A stretch of DNA of 64,000 nt from Macrostomum hystrix (lineage: Eukaryota > Animalia > Platyhelminthes). Every line of letters begins with the position of its first letter. Position 1 is the stretch's first letter. Below, piece by piece: positions 25,444-63,422 of this stretch. The stretch lies in NCBI GenBank assembly GCA_950097015.1, contig CATNEN010000034.1, positions 4,154,001-4,218,000 on the forward strand. Reading direction: 5' to 3'. Below the pieces are notes generated by a model. The model was not told where the DNA came from. It was given only the letters and a program-made list of their open reading frames with translations, and made no database searches. A program made the translations under genes and the position numbers.

Positions 25444-28400
25444 CTACAGCAGAGCTGCTGAATCAGCTTCAGACAGTGATTGGACAGCTTCTAGATCTTC
25501 TTCTTCAGCCTTTACTAGCTCAAGTTGCGCATCGGTCACATATTCGGCTGTTTCCGGTGGTTCCGCTTCCGCCTCCAGTTCCGTTTCCGCTTCCGCAGCT
25601 GGTTCGATTTCTTCTTCTTCCACTTCCGGTTCCGTCTCGGGCTCCTCTTCAAGCACGGTTGCAGAAGACTGCTGCTGTTGAAGAGGCGAATTAGCTTCCA
25701 GATCTTCTCCTTCTTCTTCTTCTAGTTGGTCTCCGGGCTCCTCACCTCGGTGCTGCCCGAGTTTCACTTCCCTGTCATCGACATCCTCGTCTTCATCTTC
25801 GTTGACAAAGAAGGTTGGCGGAGGCGGCAGCTTCTGCGGCGCTCGACGCCGTCGTTTGGCGCCGCGTTTGTCAGCGCTGGCTGTCACGGATGAGGAGCGA
25901 CGCGTTGACGAGTGACGCCGCTTTCGGGTTGTGCTGGCGGCGGCAGCTGCCGAGGATGAGGAAGCTGAATGCAGCTGCGACGGGCTGGCCAGATTTGAGT
26001 CTGAAAATGGATATCAGAGGTCGATACAGAATGCGGATTGAGGATGGAAAATGGCAATGGAGATTGTGGAAGAGGGTAGGGGAGGGGAGAGGATTGAGAA
26101 GATTCAGAATTTAAAAGAAATGGCCAAGAATTGGTAGGGGAAGAGGAAGAGTTAAAAATGGAATGGGGAAGAATTGGCAGGGTGACTCGGATACTAAATA
26201 GGATAGGGAAGAGGATATTAATCGGATAGGGAAAAGAATGAACCGGATAGGAAAGAGGATGAATTGGATAGGGAAGAGGGAAGAGGAAGAATAGGATAGG
26301 GTAGAGGAAGAATAGGATAGGGTAGAGGATGAATTGGATAGGGAAGAGGAAGAATCGGATAGGGAAGAGAATGAATCGGATAGGGAAGAGGATGAATCGG
26401 ATAGGGAAGAAAATGAATCGAATAGGGAAGAGGAAGAAGCGGATAGAGAAATGAAGAATCGGATGGGGAAGAGGAAGAATCGGATAGGGAAGAGGATGAA
26501 TCGGATGGGGAAGAGAATGAATCGGATAGGGAAGAGGAAGAAGCGGATAGGGAAGAGGATGAAGCGGATGGGGAAGAGGATGAATCGGATGGGGAAGAGG
26601 ATGAATCGGATGGGGAAGAGGATGAATCGGATGGGGAAGAGGATGAATCGGATAGGGAAGAGGAAGAAGCGGATAGGGAAGAGGATGAATCGGATAGGGA
26701 AGAGGGAAGGGGGGAGAGGAAGAGGAAGAATCGGATAGGGAATAATGCTTCAAATCGGGAAAAACAAGGGAGCAGCTAACAGAGAAATGAGTCTCACCAT
26801 CCATGGATGCGTCAGCAGGTGACGACAGCGGCAGAGCGGCCTCCTCGGCAGCTAGACACTTGCGAGTTTCATCCCAGACCCGCTCCAGCACCAGGCTGTC
26901 TTGAAAGATCAAGCTGCCATCCAGATTGTAGGTTCTCGCGTTCTCAAACAACTGGCGCACGTCGCTATCCAACTCGTCCACGCCCGAGTAGCGACCGTCG
27001 CGAACTCGCTGGCGAATGCGAGCGAAATCCAGCGGCCGGCGAATTATTTCGTAATAGTCGGGCAATTCGCGACGACTGGGCAGCCGGACGAATGGCTCGG
27101 AGAGGGGTCGGTTGTCCGTTGGGTCGCGGTATCGCATGACCGGCTGCAGCATTCGCAGCAGGTGGGCCGTCACATCCGGGTGCACAGCTGGCCGAGAGCG
27201 ACCGCTCGCTGATTTGGAAGACTTCTTCAGCGATGATTTTAACAGTTTCTTCTTCCTTTTGCCGTGACTGCCCACTTTTTCGCCGCCGTCGACATCGGCG
27301 TCGTCTACGCCGCCGGGGGTGGCCAAGTCGCCGGCGCCGGATGCGAGAGAGGCCTGCGACTGTGACTGCGGGGGCGGAGAGGTTCGGTTCGCTAGTTCCG
27401 TTAGGAGGCTAGTTTGAATGGCGGGTTTGGTAAGGATGGGAAGGTAGGCTGAAGGATAGGAAGGTAGGCTGAAGGATGGGAAGGTAGGCTGAAGGATGGG
27501 AAGGTAGGCTGAAGGATAGGAAGGTAGGCTGAAGGATAGGAAGGTAGGCTGAAGGATGGGAAGGTAGGCTGAAGGATGGGAAGGTAGGCTGAAGGATGGG
27601 AAGGTAGGCTGAAGGATAGGAAGGTAGGCTGAAGGATAGGAAGGTAGGCTGAAGGATGGGAAGGTAGGCTGAAGGATAGGAAGGTAGGCTGAAGGATAGG
27701 AAGGTAGGCTGAAGGATAGGAAGGTAGGCTGAAGGATAGGAAGGTAGGCTGAAGGATAGGAAGGTAGGCTGAAGGATGGGAAGGTAGGCTGAAGGATGGG
27801 AAGGTAGGCTGAAGGATAGGAAGGTAGGCTGAAGGATAGGAAGGTAGGCTGAAGGATGGGAAGGTAGGCTGAAGGATAGGAAGGTAGGCTGAAGGGTAGG
27901 AAGGTAGGCTGAAGGATAGGAAGGTAGGCTGAAGGATGGGAAGGTAGGCTGAAGGATAGGAAGGTAGGCTGAAGGATGGGAAGGTAGGCTGAAGGATAGG
28001 AAGGTAGGCTGAAGGATGGGAAGGTAGGCTGAAGGATGGGAAGGTAGGCTGAAGGATGGGAAGGTAGGCTGAAGGATAGGAAGGTAGGCTGAAGGATAGG
28101 AAGGTAGGCTGAAGGATGGGAAGGTAGGCTGAAGGATAGGAAGGTAGGCTGAAGGATAGGAAGGTAGGCTGAAGGATGGGAAGGTAGGCTGAAGGATAGG
28201 AAGGTAGGCTGAAGGATGGGAAGGTAGGCTGAAGGATAGGAAGGTAGGCTGAAGGATGGGAAGGTAGGCTGAAGGATGGGAAGGTAAGGGTGGGAATAGG
28301 AGGATGGGTGAAGGGTAGCAGGATAAGGTGAAGGGTAGCAGGACAGGATGAAGGGTAGGAGTATCGGGTGAAGGGTAGGAGTATCGGGTGAAGGGTAGGA

Positions 28401-31400
28401 GTATCGGGTGAAGGGTAGGAGTATCGGGTGAAGGGTAGGAGTATCGGGTGAAGGGTAGGAGGACAGTGTGAAGGGTAGGAGGACAGTGTGAAGGGTAGGA
28501 GGATAAGGTGGAGAGTAGGAGGACAGTGTGAAGGGTAGGAGGATAAGGTGAAGGGTAAGAGGACAGTGTGAAGGGTAGGAGGATAAGGTGAAGGGTAAGA
28601 GGACAGTGTGAAGGGTAGCAGGATAGGGTGAAGAGTAGGAGGACAGTGTGAAGGGTAGGAGGATAAGGTGAAGGGTAAGAGGACAGGATGAAGGGTAGCA
28701 GGATAGGGTGAAGAGTATGAGGACAGTGTGAAGGGTAGCAGGATAAGGTGAAGGGTAAGAGGACAGGATGAAGGGTAGCAGGATAAGGTGAAGGGTAAGA
28801 GGACAGTGTGAAGGGTAGCAGGATAAGGTGAAGGGTAAGAGGACAGTGTGAAGGGTAGCAGGATAAGGTGAAGGGTAAGAGGACAGGATGAAGGGTAGCA
28901 GGATAAGGTGAAGGGTAAGAGGACAGTGTGAAGGGTAGCAGGATAAGGTGAAGGGTAAGAGGACAGTGTGAAGGGTAGCAGGATAAGGTGAAGGGTAAGA
29001 GGACAGGATGAAGGGTAGGAGGATAAGGTGAAGGGTAAGAGTAAGAGGACAGGATGAAGGGTAGCAGGATAGGGTAGAGTGTAAGCAGATAGAATGAAGG
29101 GTAGAAGATTTGGGTTATTCTTACCATGAGTGAGTCCTCACTAGCCAGAGCTCGTCTCATCTTCTTCCTGTGCCGCATCTGGTCCTCCTTCTCGTAGAGG
29201 GTGCCATCTTGAATAGCCCTTATAAATTGTTGATCAGTAAGCGACTCGGTGTAGTCGACCTCCTTTCGCTGCCGCTTGCCGAAGCCCACTCCGCTCTCGC
29301 TGTCCTCGCAGTCATCCATCAGGCTGGAGGTGGCCGTCTCCTCTTCGATCCTGTTGATCCAAGGCGGCAGTTCCTCTTGCGTCAGCAGCCTAGGCCGGTC
29401 GTTGTGCCGCTCTTTGTCCATACGCTGGTAGGCCTTGAACTCTTCCTCTGTGCGGGCCAGCATCTGGTTGATGGTCTCGTCGTCGTGCACCTCCAGGCCC
29501 TCGTCGTCTCCGTCCTGCTCGTCCTCGAGTAGGGCCATGAGAAACTCGCGGCGCTGCACTCCAGTGGACTTCTGGTCGAACATGCCTGCGCGAATGATTG
29601 ATTGGGTGAATCGTCAATTAGGTGAATGGTTGACTGGGTGAATGGTTGACTGGGTGAATGGTTGATTGGGTGAATGATTGATTGGGTGAATGGTTGACTG
29701 GGTGAATGGTTGATTGGGTGAATGATTGATTGAGTGAATGATTGATTGGGTGAATGATTGATTGGGTGAATGATTGATTGGGTGAATGATTGATTGAGTG
29801 AATGATTGATTGGGTGAATGATTGATTGGGTGAATGATTGATTGGGTGAATGATTGATTGGGTGAATTGGAGACTGGGTGAATGGTAGATTGGCTGAATG
29901 GTTGATTGGGTGAATTGTCAATTGGACGAATGATTGATAGGGTGAATTGTCAATTGGACGAATGATTGATAGGGTGAATTGTCAATTGGATGAATGATTG
30001 ATAGGTGAATTGTCAATTAGACGAATGATTGATAGGGTGAATTGTCAATTGGATGAATGATTGATAGGGTGAATTGTCAATTGGATGAATGATTGATAGG
30101 GTGAATTGTCAATTGGATGAATGATTGATAGGGTGAATGATTGATAGGGTGAATTGGAGACTGGGTGATTGGTAGATTGGGTAAATGGTCGATTGGGTAA
30201 ATGGTACACTAGGTGAATGGTAGATTGGGTGAATGGTAGACTAGGTAAATGGTAGACTAGGTGAATAGTAGATTGGGTGAATGGTAGATTGGGTGAATTA
30301 TCAATTGGGTGAATGATCAATTTGGGGAACGATCAATTGGGCGAGTGATTGATTGGTTAATTCAGAGGAAAATTGTGAAATTCCAAGAGGCTAATCGGTA
30401 AGTAAGGTGAACGGGCACTCAGAACAAGGCAGCAACTCACCAGCCTGAATAACCTTCTCGTCAACGTTGAGCTTGTACCTGGCAGCAGCTAGGATTCGCT
30501 CTTCAACCGAATTGACACAGATTAGGCGCAGCACCCTGACCTCATTCTTCTGGCCAATCCGGTGAGCCCGGTCCTGGGCCTGCAGATCCTGATGGGGATT
30601 CCAGTCCGAGTCGAACAGGATGACGGTGTCGGCAGCTTGCAGGTTCAAGCCCAGGCCGCCAGCTCGGGTGCTTAGCAAGAAGATGAAATAGTCGGACTCT
30701 TTGTCGCTGAATATCTGCAGCAGGGAGCCGCGATCCTCCGACTTAGTGGTGCCGTCCAGGCGCAGGTATTTGTAGCCCATGAAGTCGAAGTAGTCCTTTG
30801 GGATACGGGCGTTTGGGAAGCGGAACAATACAGGCATTTGTCTCTCCGGTTTAGCGGTCTTGCTTTGCCTTTATCCAAAAAATGTCTCGTTTAAATCTTG
30901 TTTCTTGGTTAATCTCCATATTGGATACCTCAATCTGTTTGCCCTCTTCTCTTAATTGTTTACCCTCTTCTCTTATATGTTTACCCTCTTAACTTATCTG
31001 TTTACTCTCTTCTCTTATCTGTTTACCCTCTTCTCTTATCTGTTTACCCTCTTCTCTTATCTGTTTACCCTTTTCTCTTATCTGTTTACCCTCTTCTCTT
31101 ATCTGTTTACCCTCTTCTCTTATATGTTTACCCTCTTCTCTTTTGTTTACCCTCTTCTCTTATATGTTTACCTCTTCTCCTAACTGTTTACCCTCTTCTC
31201 CTACCTGTTTATACTATCTTCTCTCATCTGATTACCCCCTTCTCCTAATTGTTTACCCTCTTGTCCTACCTGTTTACTATCTTCTCTCATCTGATTACCC
31301 CCTTCTCCTAATTGTTTACCCTCTTGTCCTATCTGTTTACTATCTTCTCTCATCTGATTACCCCCTTCTCCTAATTGTTTACCCTCTTGTCCTATCTGTT

Positions 31401-34400
31401 TACTATCTTCTCTCATCTGATTACCCCCTTCTCCTAATTGTTTACCCTCTTGTCCTATCTGTTTACTATCTTCTCTCATCTGATTACCCCCTTCTCCTAA
31501 TTGTTTACCCTCTTGTCCTATCTGTTTACTATCTTCTCTCATCTGATTACCCCCTTCTCCTAATTGTTTACCCTCTTGTCCTATCTGTTTACTATCTTCT
31601 CTCATCTGATTACCCCCTTCTCCTAATTGTTTACCCTCTTGTCCTATCTGTTTACTATCTTCTCTCATCTGATTACCCCCTTCTCCTAATTGTTTACCCT
31701 CTTGTCCTATCTGTTTACTATCTAATCTCATATGATTTCCCTTTTCTCTAATCTGATTAGCCTCTTGTCCTACCTGTTTACCCTGAGTCCCAGCTGTTAC
31801 TACACTACAAACACCAGCTCACCTGCATAATGGTCATGAGCTGAGTCATCTGGCAGAAGATCAGCACACGATGCCCGGTGGCTTTTAATTTCGGTAGGAT
31901 GCGGCTCAGCAGCTCGAATTTGCCTGAGGATCTGTACAGATCCTCGCCGTTGACATCGTGATGACCCTTGTGCTCGGTCATGGCGTCTTCGATGTGCGGA
32001 AACAGGTAGGGATGATTGCAGATCTTGCGCAGCTGCATGATTGTGTTGTTCAGCGTCTTCACACCGCCATTGCCCTGCAAATGGGGAGAAGATAGAGAAT
32101 TTAGTAATGACTAATTAAAGAATAAATTAATTAACTGCAGGACGCCTGTGGGAACAGGCATATCATTTGGCGACAGTCGACCAGCAGCCAGTGAGGAGGT
32201 ACACTTCTCTCTATTCTACTGACTCATGAGCACACACGCACACAGATGCTGAACGCAGGCACACTCTCACATCTTACATCATCTCATTGTCAGGCAGTGT
32301 ACACTCTCAATGTGCCTTGGAGGTTGGCCCTCAAGGGCGTAAATTGTACGACAAGCCCCCAAGCCTTCTCTCCGCGGCTGCACCCAAGATGAATGTGGCC
32401 TCGCCGCAGAATCGAGCTCAGGGACCATGGTGCGAGACGAAAACAAATTAATTACGAAAACTCACTAATTACAGGCATATTATAGCCTTACTTACACCTG
32501 AGAGAATTGGGTAATGACTAATTACACACCTGAGAGAATTGGGTAATGACTAATTACACACCTGATATTAATAATAATAATAATTGCAGGAGGGCTGCGG
32601 GCAATGGCACATCATTTGGTGACACTAGACCCGCAGCCAGCGAGGAGGCAATTCTGCCGATTTCACTGACTCCTGAGCACACACGCACACAAATACTGTA
32701 CGCAGGCATACGCTCACACAGGTGTGTACATCTGCCCTGACTTTCTCATCGTCTTGTCTTTGTCTTGGAGGTTGGCCCTCAAGGGCGTCAATTCTACGAC
32801 AAGCCCCAAAGCCTTCTCTCCGCGGCTGCGCCCCAAATAAATGTGGCCTCGCCGTGGAATCGAACTTAGGGACCGTGGTGCGAGAGGCAAACGCGTTAAC
32901 CGCTCTGCCACTCACCCCCACACCTGATATTGGGTTATGACTAATTATACACCTGAGACTAAGATGACTAATTACATACCTGAGACTGGGGTTATGACTA
33001 ATTATACACCTGAGACTAAGATGACTAATTACATACCTGAGACTGGGGTTATGACTAATTACACACCTAAATTACACCCTAAAGAAGTGGACCAACCTTC
33101 TTGTCCTTCTCAGAGCCGTCGGTAAGAATAACGCCCCTCTGGCTCATGTGATGATACAGAGTCCGCTGCAGGGCGCTCATGTCGCATTTGACGACGTACT
33201 CAACCTTGTCAGGCAGCTGGGATTCCACTTCTTTTTTTAGTCGGCGCAGCAGGAAAGGTCTCAGAACCTTGTGCAATCGGCGAATGATGAGCAGGGTCTC
33301 CTCCTGATTGAGTTCGACCTTCTCTGAGCCAGATAGAGCAAATGGAGCGTTGAACCATTGCTCAAATGTGGTGACAGATGAGAACACGGAGGGTAGCAGA
33401 AAGTTCATCAGGGCCCACAATTCTGGAAGTTTGTTCTGCAGCGGCGTGCCAGTCAGCAATAGGCGATATGGGGCCGTGAAGTATGTGTTCAACACGCAGG
33501 TGAGCTTGCAGTGATGATTCTTCATTCGGTGACCCTCGTCAATGATCATGTAGCGAAATTTGATTTTGGTCAGCACAGATTTATCTTTGATAATGTACTC
33601 GTAGGTGGTGAGGAGGACATTGAACTTGGCCGAGCGAAGCTCGCTCTGCTGCAGCTGGCGACGCATCTGGGGCGAGCCTGCGGTGCGGATGCCAGATGAG
33701 GAAGAAAGGGGGATATTTCATTTTTGAGGCTATTCTGAGGATTAGAACAATTATACAAATGACCTTTTTAGATGGTACAGGTGGAAAAAATAGCCGCAGG
33801 TAGATAAGACAGGTGGGATAAATAGCCGAAAGTAGGTAAGACAGGTGGGATAAATAGCCGAAAGTAGGTAAGACAGGTGGGATAAATAGCCGCAAGTAGG
33901 TAAGAAAGGTGGGATAAATAGCCGCAAGTAGGTAAGACAGGTGGGATAAATAGCCACAAGTAGGTAAGAAAGGTGGGATAAATAGCCGCAAGTAGGTAAG
34001 ACAGGTGGGATAAATAGCCGTAAGTAGGTAAGACAGATGGGATAAATAGCCACAAGTAGATAAGACAGGTGGGATAATAGTATGGAAGAAATGACGGATA
34101 ACTATTACTAGATGGGATAAGTAGCCATACGTACAGCTACGTACAGCTTTCAGTCCATGGACTGGGGGCGCCACAACCACTCTCAATTAACAGTGCAGAG
34201 TTAAGTGACTTGCTGAAGGACACATATTTGTTCTAGTGTCGTCGGGAATCGAACCCCCGACCTTCAAGTGCCGAGTCCGACGCTTTACAACTAGGCTACA
34301 AGTGACTGGATAACGCCACACGGTGGGTAAAATAAACTAAATTCCCTAATATCCCCAAAAGCGAATCCTCACCTTTGTAAAGAACTTTCTTAACAGTCGG

Positions 34401-37400
34401 CGCCCATTTGTCGAACTCAAGTGACCAATTGGACATGGTAGAAAGCGGCATAATAATAAGGTAGGGCCCATTCTCTTTCTTCTTCTCCATCAGGTAGGTG
34501 ATGAGAGCAATAGTCTGGATGGTCTTGCCCAGACCCATCTCATCGGCCAGGATGCCATTCAGATTGTTATTATACAGCGACACCAGCCATTGCAAGCCCT
34601 TGAGCTGGTACTCCTTGAGCTTGCCGTTGACTAAGATGCTGGCCTGTTCGCGTACTCGCTCCTGAATGCTGTGAGCGCTACCGTAATAGCCCTGCTGCTG
34701 GTGATAATCGTCATCCTCCGTGCCCTTCACGGCATCGTCCAAAGCCTCTTCGTCTGAGTCCTCGTCTGAGTCTGAGGAATCCTCAGCGTCGGCGGCAGCG
34801 GCAGCGGCGGCAGCCGTCTGCTGCTGAAACTGTTCCTCCAACTCCTCGGGACACAGGACGCCATCCTCGTTGACGGGGATCACCCACCAGCCGGGATGGT
34901 CGGCCAGCCAGGACTCGAGGTCGCGAGCTAGTGGGCCGTTTTCGTCTGTTAGTCGTTCGCCTGTGCTCGGGTTCAGCACGGGCACCTGAGAGGTGGGGTG
35001 AAAAGATATTGAATTAGAGACTAGGATTATAGATGCTGGGGATTAGAGACTAGGATTATAGATGCTGGGGATTAGAGACTAGGATTATAGATGCTGGGGA
35101 TTAGAGACTAGGATTATAGATGCTGGGGATTAGAGACTAGGATTATAGATGCTGGGGATTAGAGACTAGGATTATAGATGCTGGGGATTAGAGACTAGGA
35201 TTATAGATGCTGGGGATTAGAGACTAGGATTATAGATGCTGGGGATTAGAGACTAGGATTATAGATGCTGGGGATTAGAGACTAGGATTATAGATGCTGG
35301 GGATTAGAGACTAGGATTATAGATGCTGGGGATTAGAGACTAGGATTATAGATGCTGGGGATTAGAGACTAGGATTATAGATGCTGGGGATTAGAGACTA
35401 GAATTATAGACGCTGGGGATTAGAGACTAGAATTATAGACGCTGGGGATTAGAGACTAGGATTATAGATGCTGGGGATTAGAGACTAGGATTATAGATGC
35501 TGGGGATTAGAGACTAGAATTATAGACGCTGGGGATTAGAGACTAGGATTATAGATGCTGGGGATTAGTGACTAGGATTATAAATTTTAAGGATTAGAGA
35601 CTAGGGTTTTAGATGCTGGAGATAAGAGATTAGGATTTTAGATGCTGAGGGATTAGAGATGAACACAGGATTAGGGATTAGGATCATAGTCACTGGGATT
35701 AGGGGCTAGGATCATAGTCACTGGGATTAGGGGCTAGGATCATAGTCACTGGGATTAGGGGCTAGGATCATAGTCACTGGGATTAGGGGCTAGGATCAAA
35801 GACACAGGGATTAGGAGATAGGATCATAGACACTGGGATTAGGGGCTAGGATCATAGACACTGGGATTAGGGGCTAGGATCAAAGACACTGGGATTAGGG
35901 GCTAGGATCAAAGACACAGGGATTAGGAGCTAGGATCAAAGACACTGGGATTAGGGGCTAGGATCAAAGACACAGGGATTAGGAGCTAGGATCAAAGACA
36001 CAGGGATTAGGAGCTAGGATCAAAGACACAGGGATTAGGAGCTAGGATCAAAGACACAGGGATTAGGAGCTAGGATCAAAGACACAGGGATTAGGAGCTA
36101 GGATTAAAGACACTGGGATTAGGGGCTAGGATCAAAGACACAGGGATTAGGAGCTAGGATCAAAGACACTGGGATTAGGGGCTAGAATCATAGACACAGG
36201 TATTAGGGGCTAGGATCAAAGACACTGGGATTAGGGGCTAGGATCAAAGACACAGGGATTAGGAGCTAGGATCATAGACACTGGGATTAGGGGCTTGGAA
36301 ATAATAGTCACTCGATAAATATTATAGCTAAGCATTGTTTGGGATCAAAGCTTGCAACCCTAAGAAATCCAAGGAATTATAGGTCTTTATCCGATATACA
36401 ATATATAGCACTTACCCTAGCGTCAGGATCGTCGACAGCCCGTTCTAGCCAGACCTTGGCAAGGTCGGCCTGAATCTCTCTCTGTCTTAGTCGGCGCTCC
36501 TTGTGCCTCTGGGATTTCTGCTTCCGCTTGTGCACCTTGACCAGCTTGGATAGCTTAGCGGTAAACTGGTCAGTCTGCTCCAGCAGGTAGTGCAGTCGCT
36601 GATCCTTCTGCTTGTCAATGAGTTCCCTGTAGCCTTTCTCGTCCTCGGCCATGAGGCGCCGCATGCGTTCCCGTTCGATGCGTCTCGCCTCTCGCTCGGT
36701 GTTGGCATGCCAGGCCATGACCAGCCTGTTGAGCTTGACGAGTCTGGAATTGGCCGACTTGTAGAACTCGCGCAGCTCCTTGGCGTGGGCCAGGACAGCG
36801 TTGAGAAACTCCTGATGCTTCTGCTTCTGGCGCTTCTCAGCTTCCATCTGGCGCAGCAGTTCCATGCGGACTGTGCCGCGAGCCTCGCGCAGGGCCACCT
36901 TCTTCGGCTTCTTGTAGGCGCGAGCGTTCAACGCTGTGTCCAGGCTGCTGTCCCGACGGGCCGTGCTGATCACCTGATGGCAACAGGAGTTTCTTGTAGA
37001 TGATTGAAGGGACTCGGAGACTGGTAAATCTCATCTATATGGGTCACATGAACAGTCAGTGGCACAGTCGCAGCTATTGCGCGCGGGGAGAGAGTGACAG
37101 ACAGGAGAGTGAGGACTGGGGAGGGACTGACAGCCATGGGAGGGACTGACAGCCATGGGAGGGACTGACAGCCATGGGAGAGAGTGACAGTACTGACAGA
37201 CATGGGAGAGAATGACAGCCATGGGAGAGAATGACAGCCATGGGAGAGAGTGACAGACACATTAGAGAGTGACAGACGGAAGAGTGTGACACGCAGGGGA
37301 GAGAGTGACAGCCATGGGAGAGAGTGACAGCCATGGGAGACAGTGACAGCCATGGGAGAGAGTGACAGCCATGGGAGAGAGTGACAGTCATGGGAGAGAG

Positions 37401-38810
37401 TGACAGAGCGGAGAGTTATAGACATGGGACAAAGTGACAGACACATTAGAGAGTGACAGACGGAAGAGTGTGACACGCAGGGGAGAGTGTGATTGACATG
37501 AGAGTGACAGACGGAGGAGATAAAGGGTTACTGACGAAGAAAGTGGACTATTGATAAAATGACAGTGCATTAGTCCACAGATAATTGTGATATTACTAAT
37601 ACACAATAAAATAAGTGTTTGCTGTCAGTTGTGTAAAAAACTAATTAACCAGTAAGCACAGCCCCCATCATCACCTCCTGCCGCAATTGACGCTGAAAGT
37701 TGAGCAGGCGCAGAGCTCTCAGTTCGATCTGCAGTCGGGTGCGAGACTCTTCGCTAACATTGGCAGACAACTGTTCCAACTCGGCTATGCGGCTAACAAT
37801 GCGACTCTGCATGCGCAACTCGCGTTCTTTGAGTAGCTCAGCCGGGTCTAAGCCTGGTGGGCGTTCGGTTGGAACCAGACTGTGGATAATAGGAAGCTGC
37901 TGCTGCTGCTGTTGCTGTGAATTCACAATGGGAGTAGACTGCAGAGTGGGTTGCGTCAAAGGCTGTTGCTGTTGAACAGTCGGCATCGGATGCATTGACT
38001 GAATTATAGTCGGCTGCTGCTGCTGCTGCTGCTGCGGCTGATGCTGGGACAGAGACAGGTGATGTTGAATTTGCACTGGCTGGTGCTGCAGCAGAGGCAG
38101 AGGCAGAGGCATTGTAACGGGTAGGTGAGTTGGCCCGACGGCTGCCGATGTAGCCTGTTGAACAACCGTAACCTTGATTGGGATTTGGGAAGATTTTTGT
38201 GATCATCGAAATCTATATTTTTCCGCTTTGCTGGTACCCATTTAACAGCTGGGTGAGCTATAGAAGCAATACCAAGTTAAGCGTCTTGTTAAAGGACAAA
38301 CTGTTCCCGCGGATTTTGGAATCGAACCCCCGACCTTCAAGTCGTGAGTCCGACGCTCCAACCACTAGGCTACAACCCCCCAATCATGTGCCATTATCAG
38401 CCGTGTGATTGTGAGTATCCAATCTTATCATAAAGCTTGATCTTCACCTTTGGAAGCGCAGGCATTGACATGGATACAGCGGCTGGCTGCACAGCTGCCT
38501 GTAAGCCGCCAGACAATGCAACAACGGCTGTGCCGGGCAGGGCGGTTGCTACCACATCAGAAACGACTGTAGCCACCTGAGTCTGCTGGACCTGGCCAGT
38601 CTGAGCCATCAGCAGCTGAGCAATGTTATCCGGCACTGGCCTAGTGAGCGAAGTGCCCATGGCCTGGGAGCGCAGCTGCTCAGGTATTGGCTGATTCTTG
38701 CTCAAACTTTTGTAGGCATTGATCTGGGCCCGCAGCTGGGATAATTGGGCTGGGGAGAATGGCGAACCATCTGGCTGTTGGTTTCCAGGCTGAGGCGCTA
38801 TAGCAGCCAT
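25444..38810 (-). CDS. brm: Brahma / SMARCA2-SMARCA4 SWI/SNF chromatin-remodelling ATPase; exons 38810-38448, 38154-37675, 36973-36416, 34985-34373, 33677-33097, 32074-31823, 30795-30441, 29585-29125, 27365(alternative tandem acceptors)-26798, 26000-25444
   Basis: Phase-consistent GT-AG junctions. Domain order: QLQ ([19 protein letters not shown]), [23 protein letters not shown] (WLADHPGW), SNF2_N ([14 protein letters not shown]), helicase C ([11 protein letters not shown]), SnAC ([16 protein letters not shown]), bromodomain ([14 protein letters not shown]...NARTYN), acidic tail, TAG stop. The start codon and the exon 9 acceptor are less certain. Confidence 0.96.
26150..26745. repeat. ~21-bp repeat (ggatagggaagaggatgaatc)n in brahma intron 9
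   Basis: Read directly. Confidence 0.9.
27430..28286. repeat. 20-bp minisatellite (gaaggtaggctgaaggatgg)n, about 43 units, brahma intron 8
   Basis: Read directly. Confidence 0.95.
28287..29095. repeat. 20-bp/40-bp dimeric minisatellite (gaagggtagcaggataaggt/gaagggtaagaggacagtgt) in brahma intron 8
   Basis: Read directly; alternating variants. Confidence 0.9.
29592..30350. repeat. 16-bp minisatellite (tgattgattgggtgaa)n grading into 32-bp dimers, brahma intron 7
   Basis: Read directly. Confidence 0.9.
30935..31783. repeat. ~22-bp repeat (ctgtttaccctcttctcttat) grading into a 66-bp higher-order repeat, brahma intron 6
   Basis: Read directly; 22-aa periodicity in ORF 31143-31751. Confidence 0.9.
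32121..32445 (-). mobile_element. SINE family B, diverged near-full-length copy, brahma intron 5
   Basis: Aligns along its length with 32570-32918 (ggaggttggccctcaagggcgt...acgacaagcccc). Confidence 0.8.
32490..33078. repeat. Short ~26-bp repeat (tgactaattacacacctgaga..) split by the SINE B insertion
   Basis: Copies on both sides of 32570-32918. Confidence 0.75.
32570..32918 (-). mobile_element. SINE family B, full-length tRNA-derived SINE with 13-bp TSD
   Basis: Minus-strand head GGGGTGAGTGGCAGAGCGGTT (A box)...GTTCGATTCC (B box); (TTA)n tail; TSD cacacctgatatt at 32557-32569 and 32919-32931. Confidence 0.9.
33770..34120. repeat. 32-bp minisatellite (gtaggtaagacaggtgggataaatagccgcaa)n, brahma intron 4
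   Basis: Read directly. Confidence 0.92.
34136..34301 (-). mobile_element. SINE family A, 5' part with internal deletion, brahma intron 4
   Basis: Minus strand: gtagcctagttgtaaagcgtcggactc...ggttcgattcc (A/B boxes), then gtgtccttcagcaagtcacttaactct resembling the CORE-SINE domain. Confidence 0.8.
35005..35660. repeat. 29-bp minisatellite (ggggattagagactaggattatagatgct)n, brahma intron 3
   Basis: Read directly. Confidence 0.95.
35667..36298. repeat. 28-bp minisatellite (gggattaggggctaggatcaaagacact)n, brahma intron 3
   Basis: Read directly; related to the adjacent 29-bp unit. Confidence 0.92.
37085..37520. repeat. 19-bp minisatellite (acagccatgggagagagtg)n, brahma intron 2
   Basis: Read directly. 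Confidence 0.88.
38229..38376 (-). mobile_element. SINE family A, 5' half, brahma intron 1
   Basis: tRNA-like head gtagcctagtggttggagcgtcggactcacgacttgaaggtcgggggttcgattcc and ccagctgttaaatgggtaccagc core on the minus strand. Confidence 0.82.
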
Positions 38811-38896
38811 GATGCCAGCTGCAAGGTAGAAACAATGCTTGTATAAGGCATAACAAATAGCTTTATCATGTAATGGCATGTAATTATTTGAGCTTG

Positions 38897-39190
38897 AATA
38901 ATATATTATAATTATCAAGAGTGCTGCATACAATGGCACACCATTTGGTGACACTAGATCCACAGCCATCAAGGAGGCAATTCTGCCCATTCCGCTGACT
39001 CCTAAGCACACATGCACAGATACTGTATGCAGGCACACACACAGGTGTGCACATCTGCCCTGGCAGTGTACACTCTCACTATGCCTTGGAAGTTGGCATA
39101 TAATGCCAATGAATTTGGCATCACTGCAGAATTGTACACATGGACCTTGGTGTGAGTGACTAATGCCTTGACCACTTTGCCACTCACTCC
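38897..39190 (-). mobile_element. SINE family B, CpG-decayed copy upstream of the brahma start exon
   Basis: Aligns to 32570-32918 with most CpGs changed to TpG/CpA and an internal deletion. Confidence 0.8.
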
Positions 39191-40502
39191 TAAGCTTTAG
39201 CCTGGCAATTAAGTTTTTTAGCTACAATAAGGGGTTCACTAGGAAAGAAATTATTAACAGACCAATGCTGGAAAAGATGCTGTAAGATTAGACCCTAGTA
39301 ACATATGGAATGTTAAATAAGCTAGCCTATTTTTTACCAAACAATGCTAGCTATGCCTAACATTAGATAGGCATATTGCACCTTCTTAGAAAGGTTACTG
39401 GACCCTTTGTCATCAGCTTTTTGTTATCTTACACTTCCATCATCAAGTTTTCAGATTGGACATTTTTTCATCTAGCCAATTGGCAAATCCTAAAGTTAGG
39501 CCTAATGTTGGGTCAGTTTGTCACCTATCAATAGAAACTATAGACTATAGTATTGACTTGATTTATAGTTGCAGATGCATACAACATAGGGAAAACTGTT
39601 CCAGTTCCAAATGTTTAAATTCATTTATTAAAATTTATTGAACTTATATTCATACTGTAAATGTAATACAGTTTGTTGGTATGATGGACTAGGGAAATCT
39701 AACTAATCTTATTAATGAAGTAGATAACAAAGAAAACGACTAGGCTACTGGTTTTTGAGATGGTTAATTTGAAACTCTAATTTCTAATTTCTAATTTCAG
39801 GCAAAGCATTAAGATAGCCATTAAGCATCAATAGGCTTGCTGGCTTAAGTTCAACATGCACCCTGCCTTACATCATATAGGTGACAAAGCTTCTCCTAAG
39901 ACTTGGTCACTATGTCATCCACCCTCTTAGACCCTGGACACTTTGTCATCCAGAGGACAAAAAGCAGATTATGAAGTATCCAGAAACCAGAAGGAACAAT
40001 AGGCCTACTGGATTATGAATTTTAATACAATAGATATAAAAGTAGGCCTACTGGGTCTAGCTAGCAATAGATAGTAGCCTAGATCGAATGGGTGCATGCG
40101 TAGCTAGCTATATGATCGAAATTCCAAATGCAAACAGAATACAGAATTTACAGATATAGACATAGAGTTGACTCCATAGTCAGGAAGGTGGAGGATTGTG
40201 TGCCAAAATAAATTTTGACTACGAAATAATGTTTTTAAAATTAATAAAGTGATTTAGGAAAGCACACTGAAAATATACAATTAAATTAAGACATTCTGCA
40301 TATATAATATCAAATATAAAACATTTCACGCAGCTTACGCTTTAAATTCTCTACTAGGGCTTCTTTAATAAGGCCCAATCCGACCAATCGCTTTATAAAA
40401 CTATTTAACAAATAAATAAATAAATGATCAAAATTGTGTTATTTTGAATCACCGCCAGAAATTCCTAAAAATTCCTTCGTAAAGTAGTAAACGTTTCACA
40501 GC

Positions 40503-40508
40503 ATAATA

Positions 40509-40539
<31 letters not shown>

Positions 40540-40590
40540 TGATTACACCTGCCCCAATCGGGCCAGATGTGCAGCCGACAGCACAACTGC
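40503..40590 (-). mobile_element. SINE family A, 3' end fragment with long (TTA)n tail
   Basis: (aat)n-tgattacacctgccccaatcgggccagatgtgcagccgacagcac matches 44090-44145. Confidence 0.8.
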
Positions 40591-41534
40591 AACAGCATAA
40601 CTGGTTGCAACACTTTGTCTTTTCAGTGAAAAAAACATAAATTCACTGTTTTATCTTTCTTTTCAATTAAAAGTGTAATTATTAGCATGAAGGAGCAAAA
40701 GAAACTAGATAGAAAATAGTAGCGTGGCAAAATTAACCATGCAGTCTCTCTTGACGCTACTTGATGTGACGTTACTTCTAGCGTTGAATTATACTATAAT
40801 TTAAACTGATGCACTAAATGGCATACAACATGTTTCGATAGTAGCGTTAAAAATAATTTATTTTATTAGCCAGAAAAAGTTCAAGAGAATGCAAGCATCC
40901 TTTCAGATGAAATGCTGGTGAACAAGTCCGTCCTGCCACCATTCTAGACTTATAATGCAGGCAGTGATTCTAAATCGTACAAATGACATTGAAAAATAAA
41001 TACTCCGATTTTTAACTTTAGTCAACAAAACAAAAATTGTTCCAACAGCTAAGAACGTGTTTGCCGTGTGTCTCAAATCACTTGCGTTGGATTTTGATCA
41101 TGTCAGCTTCTATAACAAAACATGTTGAAATACATAAAGCGTACTTTCAGAATGGTAATTACTACTGACCAGGTAATATATGCAGTATAAACTGTTCTTA
41201 GAAACAGTTGACCATTCTTTAATTCCGTTCCAACCATTCCGCTATAATCATCACCCGGATGCGATTGGCTGAGTTCCAAAAACAACCTGCCCAAGATCTC
41301 TAACATCGCCCATCGCCACTGCAGTCACTTTAAAAGCTTCTGCAGTTTGTCTGCGATCATAAAATGCATTAAATATCATTAGGGAATTGATTCTCTCTGT
41401 TCAATGTTCATTACAGAATTGCTTAGGAGATTTTTCAAATGAAAAGCTTCAGACTTTTCTGATGCATTCGGCAAAAACTTGGTGAGTTTTGTTTTTGCTT
41501 GATCTATTTTATCTATTAATAAGATTTCATCAAG

Positions 41535-41800
41535 ATTCTCATCTGTCTCATCTGTCTCATCTCTCCGTTTTCTCATCTCTCCCCAGTTTTATCTCTCCAC
41601 AGTCTCATCTCTCCCCAGTCTCATCTCTCCCTTGTCTAATCTCTCCCCTGTCTCATCTCTCTTTTGTCTAATCTCTCCCCTGTCTCATCCCTTCCGTGTC
41701 TCATCTCTCCCCTGTCTAATCTCTCCCCTGTCTCATCCCTTCCGTGTCTCATCTCTCACCTGTCTCATCTCTCACCTGTCTCATCTCTCCCCAATCCCAT
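41535..41800 (-). repeat. Degenerate inverted copies of the 16-bp unit of 42580-43147
   Basis: tgtctcatctctcacc (exact at about 41745-41790) is the reverse complement of ggtgagagatgagaca. Confidence 0.85.
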
Positions 41801-42579
41801 CTCTTCGCTGTCAATCCGACTTGCTGTTTCGTGCATTAAAGCAGAATAATTAATGAGTAAAAATATGCATATCATTCACCTGTAAGTTAATATTCAGGTA
41901 TTGGTCGGCTGGTAAGCATTACAGGGGTGGCGGGGTGCACTTTCCCCGCTGTCCATACTCAGGGAGAGAGCACTTGATTCCTATATTTATAACCTCGATG
42001 CACTTTTTAGCATGGGACACGTGCGAAATTTGTTCCTAACTTTTTGCCTTAATATGCGTAATGAAAAAAATCTACCTACATTCGAGCTGTTATCGGTCCA
42101 AAGCCATAGCATAAATTTATTCCATGAAAATGATAAGCTCCCGCGAGGAAGCTAACAGTGAGTAGTGAGTGAGTTGTTAACGCACAACAAATGTCCCAAC
42201 TTATATGGCAGAGGCGCCGTTAAGCACTTACTTTATTTTTATATTGAACTACAGGTGCAATTCAGTTTCTCATGAGATACATTCAAAAGAATGTTTAAGT
42301 AAAGATTGACATGAAAAAAAAACAAAATATCATCACTCAGGTGTGTAGTACTAGTAGTTGTCAAATTAGACTTTGACAAGTCAATACTCTTTTAAGAAAT
42401 AGATAAGTAAATGAAAGTCTACGTCTATTGTACGGTCGGAAAAAGCAGTAATTGATGCTAGGCATGCGAATGTGGAAACCGAGATATGACTGTGGGCCGG
42501 ATTTACTAAGAAAATATATTACGAGATGATGAACAGATTTGACGTTGCAGAGATCATCAGAAAGACGAGACACGGGATA

Positions 42580-43147
42580 GATGAGACAGGTGAGAGATGA
42601 GACAGGTGAGAGATGAGACAGGTGAGAGATGAGACAGGTGAGAGATGAGACAGGTGAGAGATGAGACAGGTGAGAGATGAGACAGGTGAGAGATGAGACA
42701 GGTGAGAGATGAGACAGGTGAGAGATGAGACAGGTGAGAGATGAGACAGGTGAGAGATGAGACAGGTGAGAGATGAGACAGGTGAGAGATGAGACAGGTG
42801 AGAGATGAGACAGGTGAGAGATGAGACAGGTGAGAGATGAGACAGGTGAGAGATGAGACAGGTGAGAGATGAGACAGGTGAGAGATGAGACAGGTGAGAG
42901 ATGAGACAGGTGAGAGATGAGACAGGTGAGAGATGAGACAGGTGAGAGATGAGACAGGTGAGAGATGAGACAGGTGAGAGATGAGACAGGTGAGAGATGA
43001 GACAGGTGAGAGATGAGACAGGTGAGAGATGAGACAGGTGAGAGATGGGACAGGTGAGAGATGAGACAGGTGAGAGATGAGACAGGTGAGAGATGAGACA
43101 GGTGAGAGATGAGACAGGTGAGAGATGAGACAGGTGAGAGATGAGAC
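42580..43147 (+). repeat. 16-bp minisatellite (gagatgagacaggtga)n, about 35 near-perfect units
   Basis: Read directly. Confidence 0.97.
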
Positions 43148-43536
43148 AAAGTCTGGTCAGGCCTCGTCAAAAGCCCTAGGCATTAAACAAAGCAGGTGGG
43201 AGAGGTTGCAGTCTCATAGTATGCATATTGTGATAAAACCTTGGAGTATAGTACGTACTGTATAATTTCTGGCTAAATTCTCAGCCACGAGTCTGCCAGT
43301 TGAAATGTCTAGCTTGAAGACGGTATTGATTTACTTGCAATTATTGGTCAGCATTCTCGTTACAGCATTTTGGTCAATAATTTTATTAAACAGGGCACAA
43401 AAAATCCTGCTTAAATTAATTTTTATTTTAGAGAAAATTTCGAATTGGCTTAATCACGGTTACTTGGCAACCAAGAATCATTGTCTCGATCTGAATGAAT
43501 ATAGACTCAACATTACACTTATATCTTATCTAACCA

Positions 43537-45806: not shown

Positions 45807-46805
45807 ATGTTGACACCGCAGCAGTTGAAGGACTTCGGCCTGGCCTATCGGGCCCTGCTGCTCTGCCTCGGCCTGCCCTCCAACGCCCTGGTGCTTTTGG
45901 CCATGTCTGCCAAGCGACTGCGGGGCGGCAGCGTCAGCGTCCAGCTTCGCGGCCTCGCCGCCAGCGGCTCCATCTCGCTGCTGTGCGGCCTGACGCCGGA
46001 TCTGGCCCTGCGCGCCGGTGCCCCGCCACCGCCGGCCGCCGAGGTCACCTGCCCGCTACTTTCCTTCCTGGAATACTGCAGCGGCGATGTGGCTGTCTGG
46101 ATTGTGCCCTGCCTGGCGGCAGACAGGCTGGTAGCCCTGCTGGCTCCGGCGCGGGCGGCAAGGCGCCTGGCAACCACTCGGGCGGCGCTACTGCAGCTGC
46201 TGTGCCTGACGCTGCTGGCTGCGGCCAAGAATGCGATCGTGCTGCCAGGCCGCTCGATGGTTGTTGTTCCGGCTGCTGGCAATTCAACTCGAACGCGCTG
46301 CACCTGGCGACCGGATTTTGCTCAAGCCAGGGAGATTCGCAGCTACATTGCCATGGCAACGGTTGCTGTGGCGCCCGCACTGCTTGTGCTAGTATTGAAC
46401 GCCATTTTGCTGTGGGCATTGTGCCGACGAATGCGTCGCGGACGTCGCACGGGCGTCGCGTCGTTAACGGCGGCACCTTCTACTTCGACGGCTACGGCGA
46501 CGGCTACAGCTGGAGCGTCGCCTTCGACATCGGACGCTACAGCGAAGGCGATGAGAGCCTCCATAGCAGTCACACTGGCCATCTCTTCGAGCTTCGTTGT
46601 GCTGCTGATGCCCAACTTTGCGTACTTGATTGTCAGTGGATTCATTGTGGCCACTCAGGACACCAAGGACCTCCTGTCCGAGGTATTCCAGATGATGTAC
46701 AACCTCAACCACACCGTCAACTTTCTGCTTTACATCGCCGCTTCGCCAAATTTCCGTAGCGAATTGGCCGCCATTCTGTTTTGCCGAAAGTCTGCCAGAG
46801 ACTGA
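45807..46805 (+). CDS. Orphan rhodopsin-family (class A) GPCR, 332 aa, single exon, peptide-receptor-like
   Basis: Seven hydrophobic segments; TM1 GLPSN, TM3 Cys and DRL, ECL2 Cys (RCTW), TM5 P (VAPALL), TM6 FVVLLMPN, TM7 NHTVNFLLY, helix 8 SPNFRSEL. Confidence 0.92.
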   Translation: MLTPQQLKDFGLAYRALLLCLGLPSNALVLLAMSAKRLRGGSVSVQLRGLAASGSISLLCGLTPDLALRAGAPPPPAAEVTCPLLSFLEYCSGDVAVWIVPCLAADRLVALLAPARAARRLATTRAALLQLLCLTLLAAAKNAIVLPGRSMVVVPAAGNSTRTRCTWRPDFAQAREIRSYIAMATVAVAPALLVLVLNAILLWALCRRMRRGRRTGVASLTAAPSTSTATATATAGASPSTSDATAKAMRASIAVTLAISSSFVVLLMPNFAYLIVSGFIVATQDTKDLLSEVFQMMYNLNHTVNFLLYIAASPNFRSELAAILFCRKSARD

Positions 46806-54026: not shown

Positions 54027-54504
54027 CACCCAGAGGCTGAGTGGTGGCACATGTGCAATGTGAGTCACACCCAGAGGCTGAGTGGTGGCACATGTGCAAT
54101 GTGAGTCACACCCAGAGGCTGAATAATGGCACATGTGCAATGTGAGTCACACCCAGAGGCTGAGTGGTGGTACATGTGCAATGTGAGTCACACCCAGAGG
54201 CTGAGTGGTGGTACATGTGCAATGTGAGTCACACCCAGAGGCTGAGTGGTGGTACATGTGCAATGTGAGTCACACCCAGAGGCTGAGTGGTGGCACATGT
54301 GCAATGTGAGTCACACCCAGAGGCTGAGTGGTGGCACATGTGCAATGTGAGTCACACCCAGAGGCTGAGTGGTGGCACATGTGCAATGTGAGTCACACCC
54401 AGAGGCTGAGTGGTGGCACATGTGCAATGTGAGTCACACCCAGAGGCTGAGTGGTGGCACATGTGCAATGTGAGTCACACCCAGAGGCTGAATGGTGGTA
54501 CATG
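54027..54504. repeat. 41-bp satellite (cacccagaggctgagtggtggcacatgtgcaatgtgagtca)n, left part
   Basis: Read directly; interrupted by LTR element A. Confidence 0.96.
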
Positions 54505-54736
54505 TGTAACACGCGGTATTTGGTGGTGTGAAACCAGATTCTACGAAGGCCCCGTGAGGCCGTGCTTGTTGTATTTATGTCAGTTGCGATTACGTAATCA
54601 GCGATGTACAGTAAATGAACGATGTTAAACGAACGAACAGTAAATACGATAGAATGATTCAGCAAATTATTAGAAATATTCCTACAATGTTACCATTCAA
54701 AAACTGTCTCAAAGGCCAGGAATAAAAACCATTACA
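54505..54736 (-). repeat. 3' LTR of element A
   Basis: Direct repeat of 63423-63654; PPT gcgggggagaaa adjacent on the minus strand (54737-54748). Confidence 0.95.
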
Positions 54737-55949
54737 TTTCTCCCCCGCGAAACAATAGACAATCTGAATCGCAAAATTGAAAACGCAGAACCAGTTAAAA
54801 AAACGCATTCACAGTCTCTGAACAGTCTCTGAACAGTCCATCGCTCTCCGCTCATTCACCGCTCACACTGAAGAAGTCCGGAGGTCGCCTCTCCCGCTCC
54901 GGGTACCGCCGCTCGGCCTGGCGGGTCTTATACGCGACCTCGTGGGACACCGGCTGCTGACGGAACTGCTCGGTGTCAGGCTGGGCTACAAACCGCCTTC
55001 GCAGCCGGTTCACGTGCACCCAGCGGACCGGTCGGTTGCCGAAGGCGCGGCGGATGCACACCGAGTGGCCGCGCTGCTCGAGCACCGTCCAGCCAGGCTC
55101 CCAGTAGGGCGCGAGCTTCGAGCGCCGCATCTCGATGCTGAGCAGCACCTCGGCGCTTTGCGGGAACTGCGGCAGGTCCGCCGCTTTCTTGTCGTGAGCC
55201 GCCTTCTGCTGCTGCCCGGCGGCCACCAGATTCTCCTCGACGAACTCGCGGATCCGGGCCAGTCGCTGCTCCAGCAGCGCTGAGTAGGTGCTGATGTCGA
55301 ACTGCCGCTCGCTGCTCTGCACCTTCGGCGGGAGTTGCGGGTCGCGGCCGGTCATCACCGTCAGCGGTGCCACCTTGGTTGAGCTGTGGACCCTGGAGTT
55401 GTAGGACAGGACCACTAGCGGCAGCTGCTCCTCCCAGCTGGACTCGGTCTCGGCGAACAGCCTCAGCAGCTGCAGCAGCGACTTGTTGCCGCGCTCCACT
55501 AGTCCGTTTCCCTGCGGATGATACGGCGTGGTGCGCGTTTTCCTGATGCCCAGCGCTTGCAGCGTCTCCTGGAACAGCTCGCTCTCGAAGTTCGCGCCTT
55601 GGTCCGAGTGGATGACGGACTCCAAACAGGGAGAAGACCTTCACTGCAGCATCCACGATGGTTTTGGCGGTCTGATCTGGCATCGGCACGGCGGTCAGTG
55701 TTGTGATTGACAATGCTTGCGCATATGCTTGAAAACTGACAATGAACTATTGACCATATTGAATGCGTGCGTGGGCGCATACGGCACTCAGGCTAGAGTG
55801 AGTAGGATTGCGTATTGAGTTGTCAACGTGCATTATTAAGCAACGTGCAAGTAGGAGATGAACTCTATAAGTATAATGTGAGCGAGACTTGTGTCTCTGA
55901 GCGTGAAACTTCAATCAACAAAACTCTTGTGTCAATTAGAACACAACAA

Positions 55950-59894: not shown

Positions 59895-60136
59895 TTGACA
59901 ATGCTTGCGCATATGCTTGAAAACTGACAATGAACTATTGACCATATTGAATGCGTGCGTGGGCGCATACGGCACTCAGGCTAGAGTGAGTAGGATTGCG
60001 TATTGAGTTGTCAACGTGCATTATTAAGCAACGTGCAAGTAGGAGATGAACTCTATAAATATAATGTGAGCGAGACTTGTGTCTCTGAGCGTGAAACTTC
60101 AATCAACAAAACTCTTGTGTCAATTAGAACACAACA
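59887..60136 (+). repeat. 3' LTR of element B
   Basis: Direct repeat of 55699-55948. Confidence 0.96.
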
Positions 60137-62603: not shown

Positions 62604-62660
62604 GCCCGCGCTCAGAACTGGCCAGGGTTGCGGGCTCCGCCCCGGCCGTTGCCGTTTCCC
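62604..62660 (-). promoter_or_regulatory. -1 ribosomal frameshift signal: slippery G GGA AAC plus H-type pseudoknot
   Basis: Heptamer at 62660-62654 in the gag frame; pol is in the -1 frame; stems GGCCGGGG/CCCUGGCC and GCCCGC/GCGGGC after a 6-nt spacer. Confidence 0.85.
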
Positions 62661-63403
62661 GACGGCTTCTTGCAGTTTCTGGCGAGGTGGCCGCGTTGGT
62701 TGCAGTTCCAGCAGGTTACCTCGCGCTGTCTCCTCGCACTGCGAACCGCGCAGGAGTCGGAAGCCTCCGAGCCCAGCTTCGCTGCCAGGTCTTGGACCGT
62801 CGCCTGCAGTGAGCTGACCGCGGCCCTCAGATCTGCGGTCTCGGTGCTGCCGCAAGTAGTTCCGGCTGCCGCCGCGAGGGGCGGCCGGCTTCCATCCGTG
62901 GTGGCAGAAGGCAGCTCCAGTAGCAGCTGTGCCCGCGCAAGAGCGTCGCTTACCGTCTTGACTGACGCATCGGCTCTGATTTGCCTGCTGACATCCGCTG
63001 GCAGTCCGCGGATGAAGTGATGGGTCAGCATGGTGTCTGTGGCGTCCTTGTTGCTCACGCCAGCGTCCTTGAGCAGCTGCTTCAGGTGATAGAGAAACAG
63101 CCGAGGAGGTTCCCCAGGCAGCAGCTTCCGGCTCTCAAATGCCTCCAGCGCTGAGAAGTGCTGGCTTTCTGGGTGAAATGCCTCGGTCAATGCTTGGGTC
63201 ACCTGACTGTAGTCGCTCTTATCCTTGTCGCCGAGCTCAAGGAAGACCGCCAGAGCCTCGCCATCCAGAAACGTTGGCAGATGCAAGTGCTTATCATTTG
63301 TCCACTTGTTGGCTGCCGCACACAGCTCAAACCGCTGCAGCCACTCCTTAAAGTTTCCAGAGCTTAAAGTTCTCGGAATCGCGCGATGACTGCCCTCTGC
63401 CAT
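62612..63403 (-). CDS. gag of element A with CCHC zinc knuckle
   Basis: ATG at 63403 just after the PBS; FKEWLQRFELCAAANKW; CWNCNQRGHLARNC. Confidence 0.92.
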   Translation of the reverse strand: MAEGSHRAIPRTLSSGNFKEWLQRFELCAAANKWTNDKHLHLPTFLDGEALAVFLELGDKDKSDYSQVTQALTEAFHPESQHFSALEAFESRKLLPGEPPRLFLYHLKQLLKDAGVSNKDATDTMLTHHFIRGLPADVSRQIRADASVKTVSDALARAQLLLELPSATTDGSRPPLAAAAGTTCGSTETADLRAAVSSLQATVQDLAAKLGSEASDSCAVRSARRQREVTCWNCNQRGHLARNCKKPSGNGNGRGGARNPGQF

Positions 63404-63408
63404 TCTGA

Positions 63409-63420
63409 GCTCTGCTACCA
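63409..63420 (-). other. Primer-binding site of element A (TGGTAGCAGAGC), initiator tRNA-Met
   Basis: 2 nt inside the 5' LTR; complementary to the GCTCTGCTACCA 3' end of invertebrate tRNAi-Met. Confidence 0.85.
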
Positions 63421-63422
63421 CT

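Follow-up and report, generated by a model that had tools for sequence, protein, structure and literature searches.

The window, that is, the whole 64-kb stretch of Macrostomum hystrix DNA that was analysed, carries on its minus strand a brahma/BRG1-like gene whose body extends over 25884-38818 and whose introns are full of minisatellites. The gene had been called brahma in a first-pass annotation made from the sequence, and this assignment was supported when its exons were scanned one by one against Pfam, which gave matches to QLQ (38397-38810), HSA, BRK plus SNF2, SNF2, Helicase_C and bromodomain (25884-27326); the gene body was also traced by tblastn of two proteins, P0001 and P0002. The first coding exon (38445-38818, minus strand, the 3' end at about 38445 being approximate) encodes the QLQ domain (Pfam 2.4e-13), and its ATG lies at 38810-38808. 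A congener fragment (P0001), 77% identical in the representative-protein search, was aligned by tblastn to 38735-38439, and a homologous-protein search with the first coding exon gave no match. When the P/Q-rich N-terminus of 237 residues from a relative (P0002) was searched by tblastn, no minus-strand exon was found upstream of the ATG exon. On the opposite strand, an apparently intronless gene for a rhodopsin-family GPCR (45807-46805, plus strand) lies head-to-head with brahma. Because no upstream minus-strand exon was found with P0002 and the opposite-strand GPCR gene starts from 45807, position 38810 is probably the start codon of brahma.

Directly upstream of this exon lies a stretch that is almost free of CpG. 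The desert covers 38798-40084, a span of 1287 bp bounded by the CpGs at 38796 and 40085, with a CpG o/e of about 0.04-0.05 and a GC content of 38%. For 38821-40084 the first-pass annotation had reported only two CpGs (38993 and 39737) in 1264 bp, where about 40 would be expected; the same two were counted here against 43.9 expected at 37.3% GC (o/e 0.046). Over the same interval TpG and CpA together had an o/e of 1.30 (1.27 for TpG and 1.35 for CpA taken singly), so the CpG deficit is accompanied by a reciprocal TpG/CpA excess relative to the flanks, as in a footprint of 5mC deamination; in this comparison the CpG o/e of the right flank was 0.84. At the right edge three CpGs fall within 33 bp, and the CpG-normal flank on the gene-upstream side (40085-40500) holds 11 CpGs in 416 bp (o/e 1.12), in agreement with the roughly 11 in about 415 bp estimated before. 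If CpGs occurred at the local background level (o/e 0.82), two or fewer would be found in the desert with a Poisson probability of about 5e-14. About 72% of the desert is derived from transposons, and the 352 bp that have no match elsewhere in the genome contain no CpG at all, compared with 8.6 expected (P=2e-4).

The desert is also rare against the background, where the median CpG o/e was 0.82-0.86 and only 3 of 333 repeat-masked windows fell below 0.1, two of the three being this desert. Minisatellites make up 41% of the 64-kb window, and several of their arrays are CpG-free owing to the sequence of the unit. After masking of tandem arrays, 61 windows of 500 bp were left, and the two with an o/e below 0.1 were both the desert. 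A tandem-repeat artefact was rejected, since tandem repeats are absent from the desert, whereas minisatellites account for the other blocks in the window that lack CpG. AT-rich DNA, which had been named beforehand as a cause that would speak against a methylation footprint, was ruled out by GC-stratified, repeat-masked windows: at a GC content of 0.32-0.42 their median o/e was about 0.8, and only 2 of 195 were below 0.1.

On the minus strand, the desert starts at an acceptor-like site 8 nt ahead of the brahma ATG. The start of the QLQ exon reads as acceptor-like ttgtttctaccttgCAG (CAG) at 38821-38819, followed by CTGGCATC and then the ATG. Because the desert lies upstream of the ATG exon and behind this acceptor-like site, it would be a 5'UTR intron or a trans-splicing outron, or alternatively promoter DNA. 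It has been reported that 10 to 20% of M. hystrix genes undergo SL trans-splicing (PMC10468722). The possibility that the desert is an internal intron behind an upstream P/Q-rich coding exon was rejected on the tblastn result with the relative's N-terminus. About 290 bp beyond the upstream edge, in CpG-normal DNA, CCAAT occurs at 40375 and 40384 and the TATA-like TTTATAAA at 40392, and this cluster is a candidate promoter judging by its motifs. No RNA family was found by Rfam in 37500-41500, no tRNA gene was found by ARAGORN, and no CpG desert was present upstream of the GPCR gene.

One of the two old transposon insertions in the desert is a SINE B copy (38897-39195, minus strand, the same sense as brahma) with an internal deletion of about 50 bp. 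The family is tRNA-derived, about 349 bp long with an (ATT)n tail, and at least 4269 candidates were found in the genome; at C14:899793-900017 the last 55 bp of SINE B form a tandem array beside a full copy. Its consensus, built from 29 young copies, contains 21 CpGs, and 14 of them could be aligned to the desert copy. Eleven had become TG or CA (5 TG, 6 CA), two had changed otherwise and one was kept, a stronger decay than the ten or more CpG to TpG/CpA changes originally claimed. The non-CpG divergence of the copy is 13.1% (20 transitions and 12 transversions). If CpGs had been lost at the same rate as other sites, 24% of them would be expected to be missing, compared with the 13 of 14 lost (binomial p=1e-7). 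Similarly, nine age-matched SINE B copies elsewhere (7-12% divergence) had lost 54 of 149 CpGs (36%; Fisher p=4e-5 against the desert copy), one of the nine, in a downstream brahma intron (12.5% diverged), keeps 9 of 16, and the young copies keep 587 of 609. Taken relative to non-CpG transitions, CpG decay amounts roughly to 16-fold for the desert copy, 4.5-fold for the age-matched copies and 1.7-fold for the young ones. The objection that the SINE might merely be older, which had also been raised beforehand, is correct in that the copy is old, yet its CpG loss is far above what its age predicts; simple age was ruled out by the age-matched SINE B copies and by the MITE C copies described below. 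These data also bear on an ordinary explanation of the desert as an old AT-rich intron that became CpG-poor by age or by chance. The GC content of 37% and the divergence of the repeats (13%) would fit such an intron, but the 64% of CpGs kept in age-matched repeats, the GC-matched windows and the Poisson estimate given above make it highly improbable.

The second insertion is an old copy of MITE C (39393-39988), an element of about 600 bp that ends in inverted repeats of about 22 bp. Two CpG-intact copies elsewhere in the genome (L041 and L046) have CG in common at 16 sites, of which 13 could be aligned in the desert copy. CG was kept at none of the 13 (8 are TG or CA and 5 are other), at a non-CpG divergence of 12.9% (the intact copies show 8.6-10.8%). 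For 12 of the 16 sites, TG occurs in some MITE C copies and CA in others, and therefore the sites have decayed independently from CG. There was a weak CpA excess in the MITE copies, which is inseparable from the effect of mis-inferred ancestral CpGs. Around the decayed MITE copies the DNA is CpG-poor over 1-3 kb, and around the intact ones it is normal, so the effect is regional and not bound to the element.

The two insertions raise the question of whether methylation was directed at the MITE and/or the SINE, for example via small RNAs, and spread a few hundred bp into neighbouring DNA, the position next to brahma being coincidental. It is consistent with this explanation that SINE B and MITE C account for most of the desert and that 9 of the 11 MITE C copies retrieved were CpG-decayed, but the query was itself a decayed copy, which biases the retrieval. 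Two MITE C copies of about the same age keep their CpGs in full, and the DNA around them is CpG-normal; the deserts around decayed MITE C copies reach 0.3-1.5 kb beyond the element, and two deserts described below, at the DNMT1 gene and at a Ras-type gene (L080), consist of unique DNA. Furthermore, neither the young SINE B copies nor two Ty3/gypsy elements at 54.5-64 kb of the window (CpG-normal, o/e about 1) show CpG decay. Decay thus did not follow transposon family, and we consider transposon-directed methylation unlikely as the cause of the desert.

In the desert SINE B copy, the frequency of non-CpG C>T changes (11 of 126) was close to that of A/T transitions (9 of about 119), which makes the decay CpG-specific; it is also strand-symmetric, with nearly equal numbers of TG and CA. 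Both are features of a 5mC-deamination footprint. Single-strand deamination produces a strand bias and acts on cytosines in all sequence contexts. These facts weigh against a local mutational process without 5mC, which might be cytosine deamination associated with transcription or R-loops near the transcription start site, or a process tied to sequence bearing the palindrome TAGGCCTA (see below). Such a process would explain why the desert adjoins the likely promoter and why a palindromic motif is enriched in deserts; CpG-specific and symmetric loss is hard to reconcile with it, and we hold it to be very unlikely. Repeat-induced point mutation (RIP) of fungi resembles the present pattern in the C>T and G>A hypermutation of repeat copies. 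However, RIP affects duplicated DNA only and has a CpA>TpA bias, whereas the changes here are CpG-specific without a CpA bias in the SINE copy, the unique DNA of the desert is CpG-free as well, and repeats of like age are spared elsewhere. An origin by RIP-like mutation or cDNA editing was therefore ruled out by the strand symmetry, the CpG specificity and the decay of unique DNA.

The decay has a limit on the gene side as well. Some 70 bp past the ATG exon, the next intron contains an old SINE A copy (38229-38376, minus strand). Its divergence from the family is about 12-13%, with 87-88% identity to the closest copies in the genome, yet 5 of its 6 consensus CpGs are kept, in line with what the first-pass annotation had noticed for this copy; the decay therefore ends within or at the ATG exon. 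From 5' to 3', the CpG o/e of the brahma exons was 0.43, 0.61, 0.87, 0.85, 0.78, 0.77 and 1.14, the non-repeat DNA of the gene body had an o/e of 0.78, and intronic SINE copies keep their CpGs. Thus the earlier statement that the downstream exons keep their CpGs holds for the later exons (0.77-1.14), but not for the ATG exon and the one after it. Since SINE A only about 70 bp further on is untouched, the low value of the ATG exon may come from its Q/A-rich coding sequence rather than from methylation. The CpG-normal Ty3/gypsy elements and young SINEs mean that the effect is local, neither genome-wide nor transposon-wide.

To our knowledge, DNMT1 and DNMT3 have been lost in planarians and parasitic flatworms and kept in Macrostomum. 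The M. hystrix assembly (220,453,370 bases in 42 contigs) was found to encode both maintenance and de novo CpG methyltransferases, so the check for DNMT1/3 genes suggested at first pass turned out positive, with the catalytic motifs intact. DNMT1 is located on contig C2 and has an RFD domain and the motifs GGPPCQG and LLENVRNF. DNMT3 is located on C11 (3925561-3928589) and has an ADD domain, a methyltransferase match and the motif GGSPCN. A third C5-methyltransferase was found on C39, together with two SRA-domain loci and MBD in the genome. No PWWP domain was matched near the DNMT3 locus at E<=0.01. In other animals, DNMT3 is tied to H3K36-methylated gene bodies through a PWWP domain. Four PWWP matches with identical scores were found at C10:2398436, C33:2666344, C39:286970 and C39:4733598 in open frames of 838-1163 aa, which looks like a repeated, possibly transposon-borne gene carrying PWWP.

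The presence of these genes has to be considered together with the possibility that the desert is a fossil, i.e. that it records methylation in an ancestor and that today the mark is not placed on this region, or on any other in such a pattern. Sequence records past mutation only, and it has been reported that the congener M. lignano has kept DNMT1 and DNMT3 with low 5mC, which is also low in the adult (PMC11292947, PMC10658182). Against a fossil domain, the DNMT1, DNMT3, SRA and MBD genes are intact where examined, and decay is near complete in insertions that are only about 13% diverged, so the process must have acted after those insertions. An extinct mark is in our judgement distinctly unlikely.

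Deserts were also sought elsewhere in the genome, the rule being a length of 600 bp or more, an o/e <0.1, an expectation of 10 or more CpGs and a tandem-repeat share below 30%. The sample outside the 64-kb window was about 270 kb and partly biased. Outside the loci chosen via the decayed MITE, five deserts were found in about 290 kb (about 230 kb of it free of tandem repeats), that of brahma included, and only about 2% of the sampled DNA lies in such domains. One of them (L006:2216-3084; C2:2160425-2161293) lies directly upstream of the ATG exon of DNMT1 (MGRKRK..., with RFD). It consists of unique DNA and has 2 CpGs compared with 21 expected, and the DNMT1 exons have an o/e of about 1. Another, also of unique DNA, lies in front of exon 2 of the Ras-type gene L080, and two more were found at L029 and L072. 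The open reading frames beside the MITE-locus deserts gave no Pfam match. None of 27 full-length, mostly single-exon Ras-type genes sampled had a desert within 1.5 kb upstream, and therefore the pattern is not general for gene starts. At C29:4.80-4.85 Mb, at least 14 single-exon Ras-family genes form a tandem cluster.

A palindrome is enriched in the deserts. In the 64-kb window TAGGCCTA occurs three times (39497, 40000 and 40043), each time in the desert, with 0.65 expected per window. The first copy occupies 39497-39504, and the other two are a pair of TAGGCCTACTGG motifs (40000-40050) located 41-84 bp inside the gene-upstream edge. Across the sample, TAGGCCTA was counted 14 times in 18.6 kb of deserts and 20 times in 312 kb outside, an enrichment of about 12-fold in deserts, and the median local CpG o/e was 0.245 at motif sites compared with 0.78 at GC-matched control positions. 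In repeat-masked deserts it was the second most enriched 8-mer (p=3e-8, about 1e-3 corrected), and the only GC-balanced 8-mer near the top of the enrichment. At genes of known direction the motifs are found nearer the upstream edge (40000 and 40043 at brahma, L006:3237 at DNMT1, and L080:3198). Further sites were found at L029:2993 and 3071 and at L040:1445-1680, and the motif is often clustered or present as TAGGCCTAGGCCTA. The MITE consensus contains a version of TAGGCCTA that is one base shorter. TAGGCCTA may act as a promoter element, serve as a boundary or as a seeding site, or be left over from MITE-like sequence; no mention of it in this sense was found in the literature searched.

Taken together, the desert is a real and non-random feature, in which almost all CpGs of two dated transposons and of unique DNA have been converted to TpG or CpA. 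The explanation that we judge likely is a footprint left by a dense and symmetric domain of CpG methylation in the germline or stem cells, only about 1.3-1.7 kb in size and located upstream of the first coding exon of brahma. The reading of the first-pass annotation, deamination of 5mC confined to the 5' transcribed region of a housekeeping gene, is thereby supported in part: the CpG-specific and strand-symmetric decay, the brahma-like gene, the flatworm genome and the DNMT1 and DNMT3 genes were all established, 5mC itself is what we infer from them, and transcription of the desert and the housekeeping role of the gene are assumptions of that reading. The likely promoter and the first coding exon would flank the domain, whose most probable setting is a 5'UTR intron or a trans-splicing outron. 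DNMT3 would set the mark, and DNMT1 together with an SRA-domain (UHRF1-like) protein would maintain it. Deamination of 5mC would then remove CpGs at about 16 times the rate of other transitions on both strands equally, and the CpG-normal flank at 40085-40500 would correspond to the protected promoter. The domain might be one of a few thousand islands that precede early coding exons in conserved genes and carry clusters of TAGGCCTA as a mark. Several observations stand against this explanation: the gene body downstream is hardly CpG-depleted, unlike in classical gene-body methylation, SINE A close behind the ATG exon is untouched, most of the desert comes from transposons, the 27 Ras-type genes have no such desert, and the sample outside the window is small and partly biased.

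The desert was further compared with known methylation systems. It shares with the mosaic CpG methylation of invertebrates (molluscs, annelids, cnidarians and Ciona) a bounded CpG deficit with TpG/CpA excess in a CpG-normal genome, the presence of both DNMT1 and DNMT3 and the involvement of conserved genes. However, the footprint here is only about 1.3 kb long and lies upstream of the first coding exon, and the rest of the 13-kb gene body is near background; the depletion across the transcribed body that characterizes gene-body methylation is absent, because the body is not depleted. In hymenopteran insects intragenic methylation is sparse and 5'-biased, located after the translation start site (PMC3622302), and in the honeybee about 1% of CpGs are methylated (PMC9246332). 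What these insects share with the domain proposed here is methylation that is low overall and concentrated, in some of the genes, in a short region on the 5' side, but here the decay precedes the ATG exon and hardly touches the coding exons, so the insect type does not apply. Vertebrate global methylation with CpG islands likewise has a CpG-normal promoter flank beside CpG-depleted DNA; the polarity is inverted here, since it is depletion that forms rare islands, in a genome of normal CpG content at large (median o/e about 0.82). The desert thus works like known methylation footprints, yet it is without the defining features of gene-body methylation or of insect-type 5' methylation.

The deserts suggest a placement unlike that of gene-body and transposon methylation, with methylation restricted to short stretches ahead of the first coding exon and accompanied by a motif. 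A more far-reaching and rather doubtful extrapolation from these sequences is that macrostomids might have a kind of methylome that has been described for no animal so far: a few thousand near-fully methylated islands of about 1-2 kb, set in the first intron or outron between promoter and first coding exon of conserved genes, the DNMT1 gene included. The islands would be marked or seeded by clustered TAGGCCTA and methylated by a DNMT3 in which PWWP was not detected, gene bodies and transposons being unmethylated. The deserts can be used as a locus-level prediction of germline 5mC sites in Macrostomum. If the prediction is true, they would offer a compact system for studying how methylation is aimed and what role it plays near promoters, in an animal whose adult stem cells are pluripotent.

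In addition, some features of the repeats in the window were recorded. Over 1-54500, the minisatellites have units of 12-63 bp, fill the brahma introns and the neighbouring DNA, and many of them have an extreme strand skew. One 16-bp unit forms inverted arrays at 41552-41812 and 42563-43148. The two Ty3/gypsy elements are represented by an open frame of 1359 aa (55815-59894, plus strand) and a broken element (60124-63583, minus strand), and they lie in a 9-kb block that has the same 41-bp minisatellite at both ends (54027-54506 and 63654-64000).
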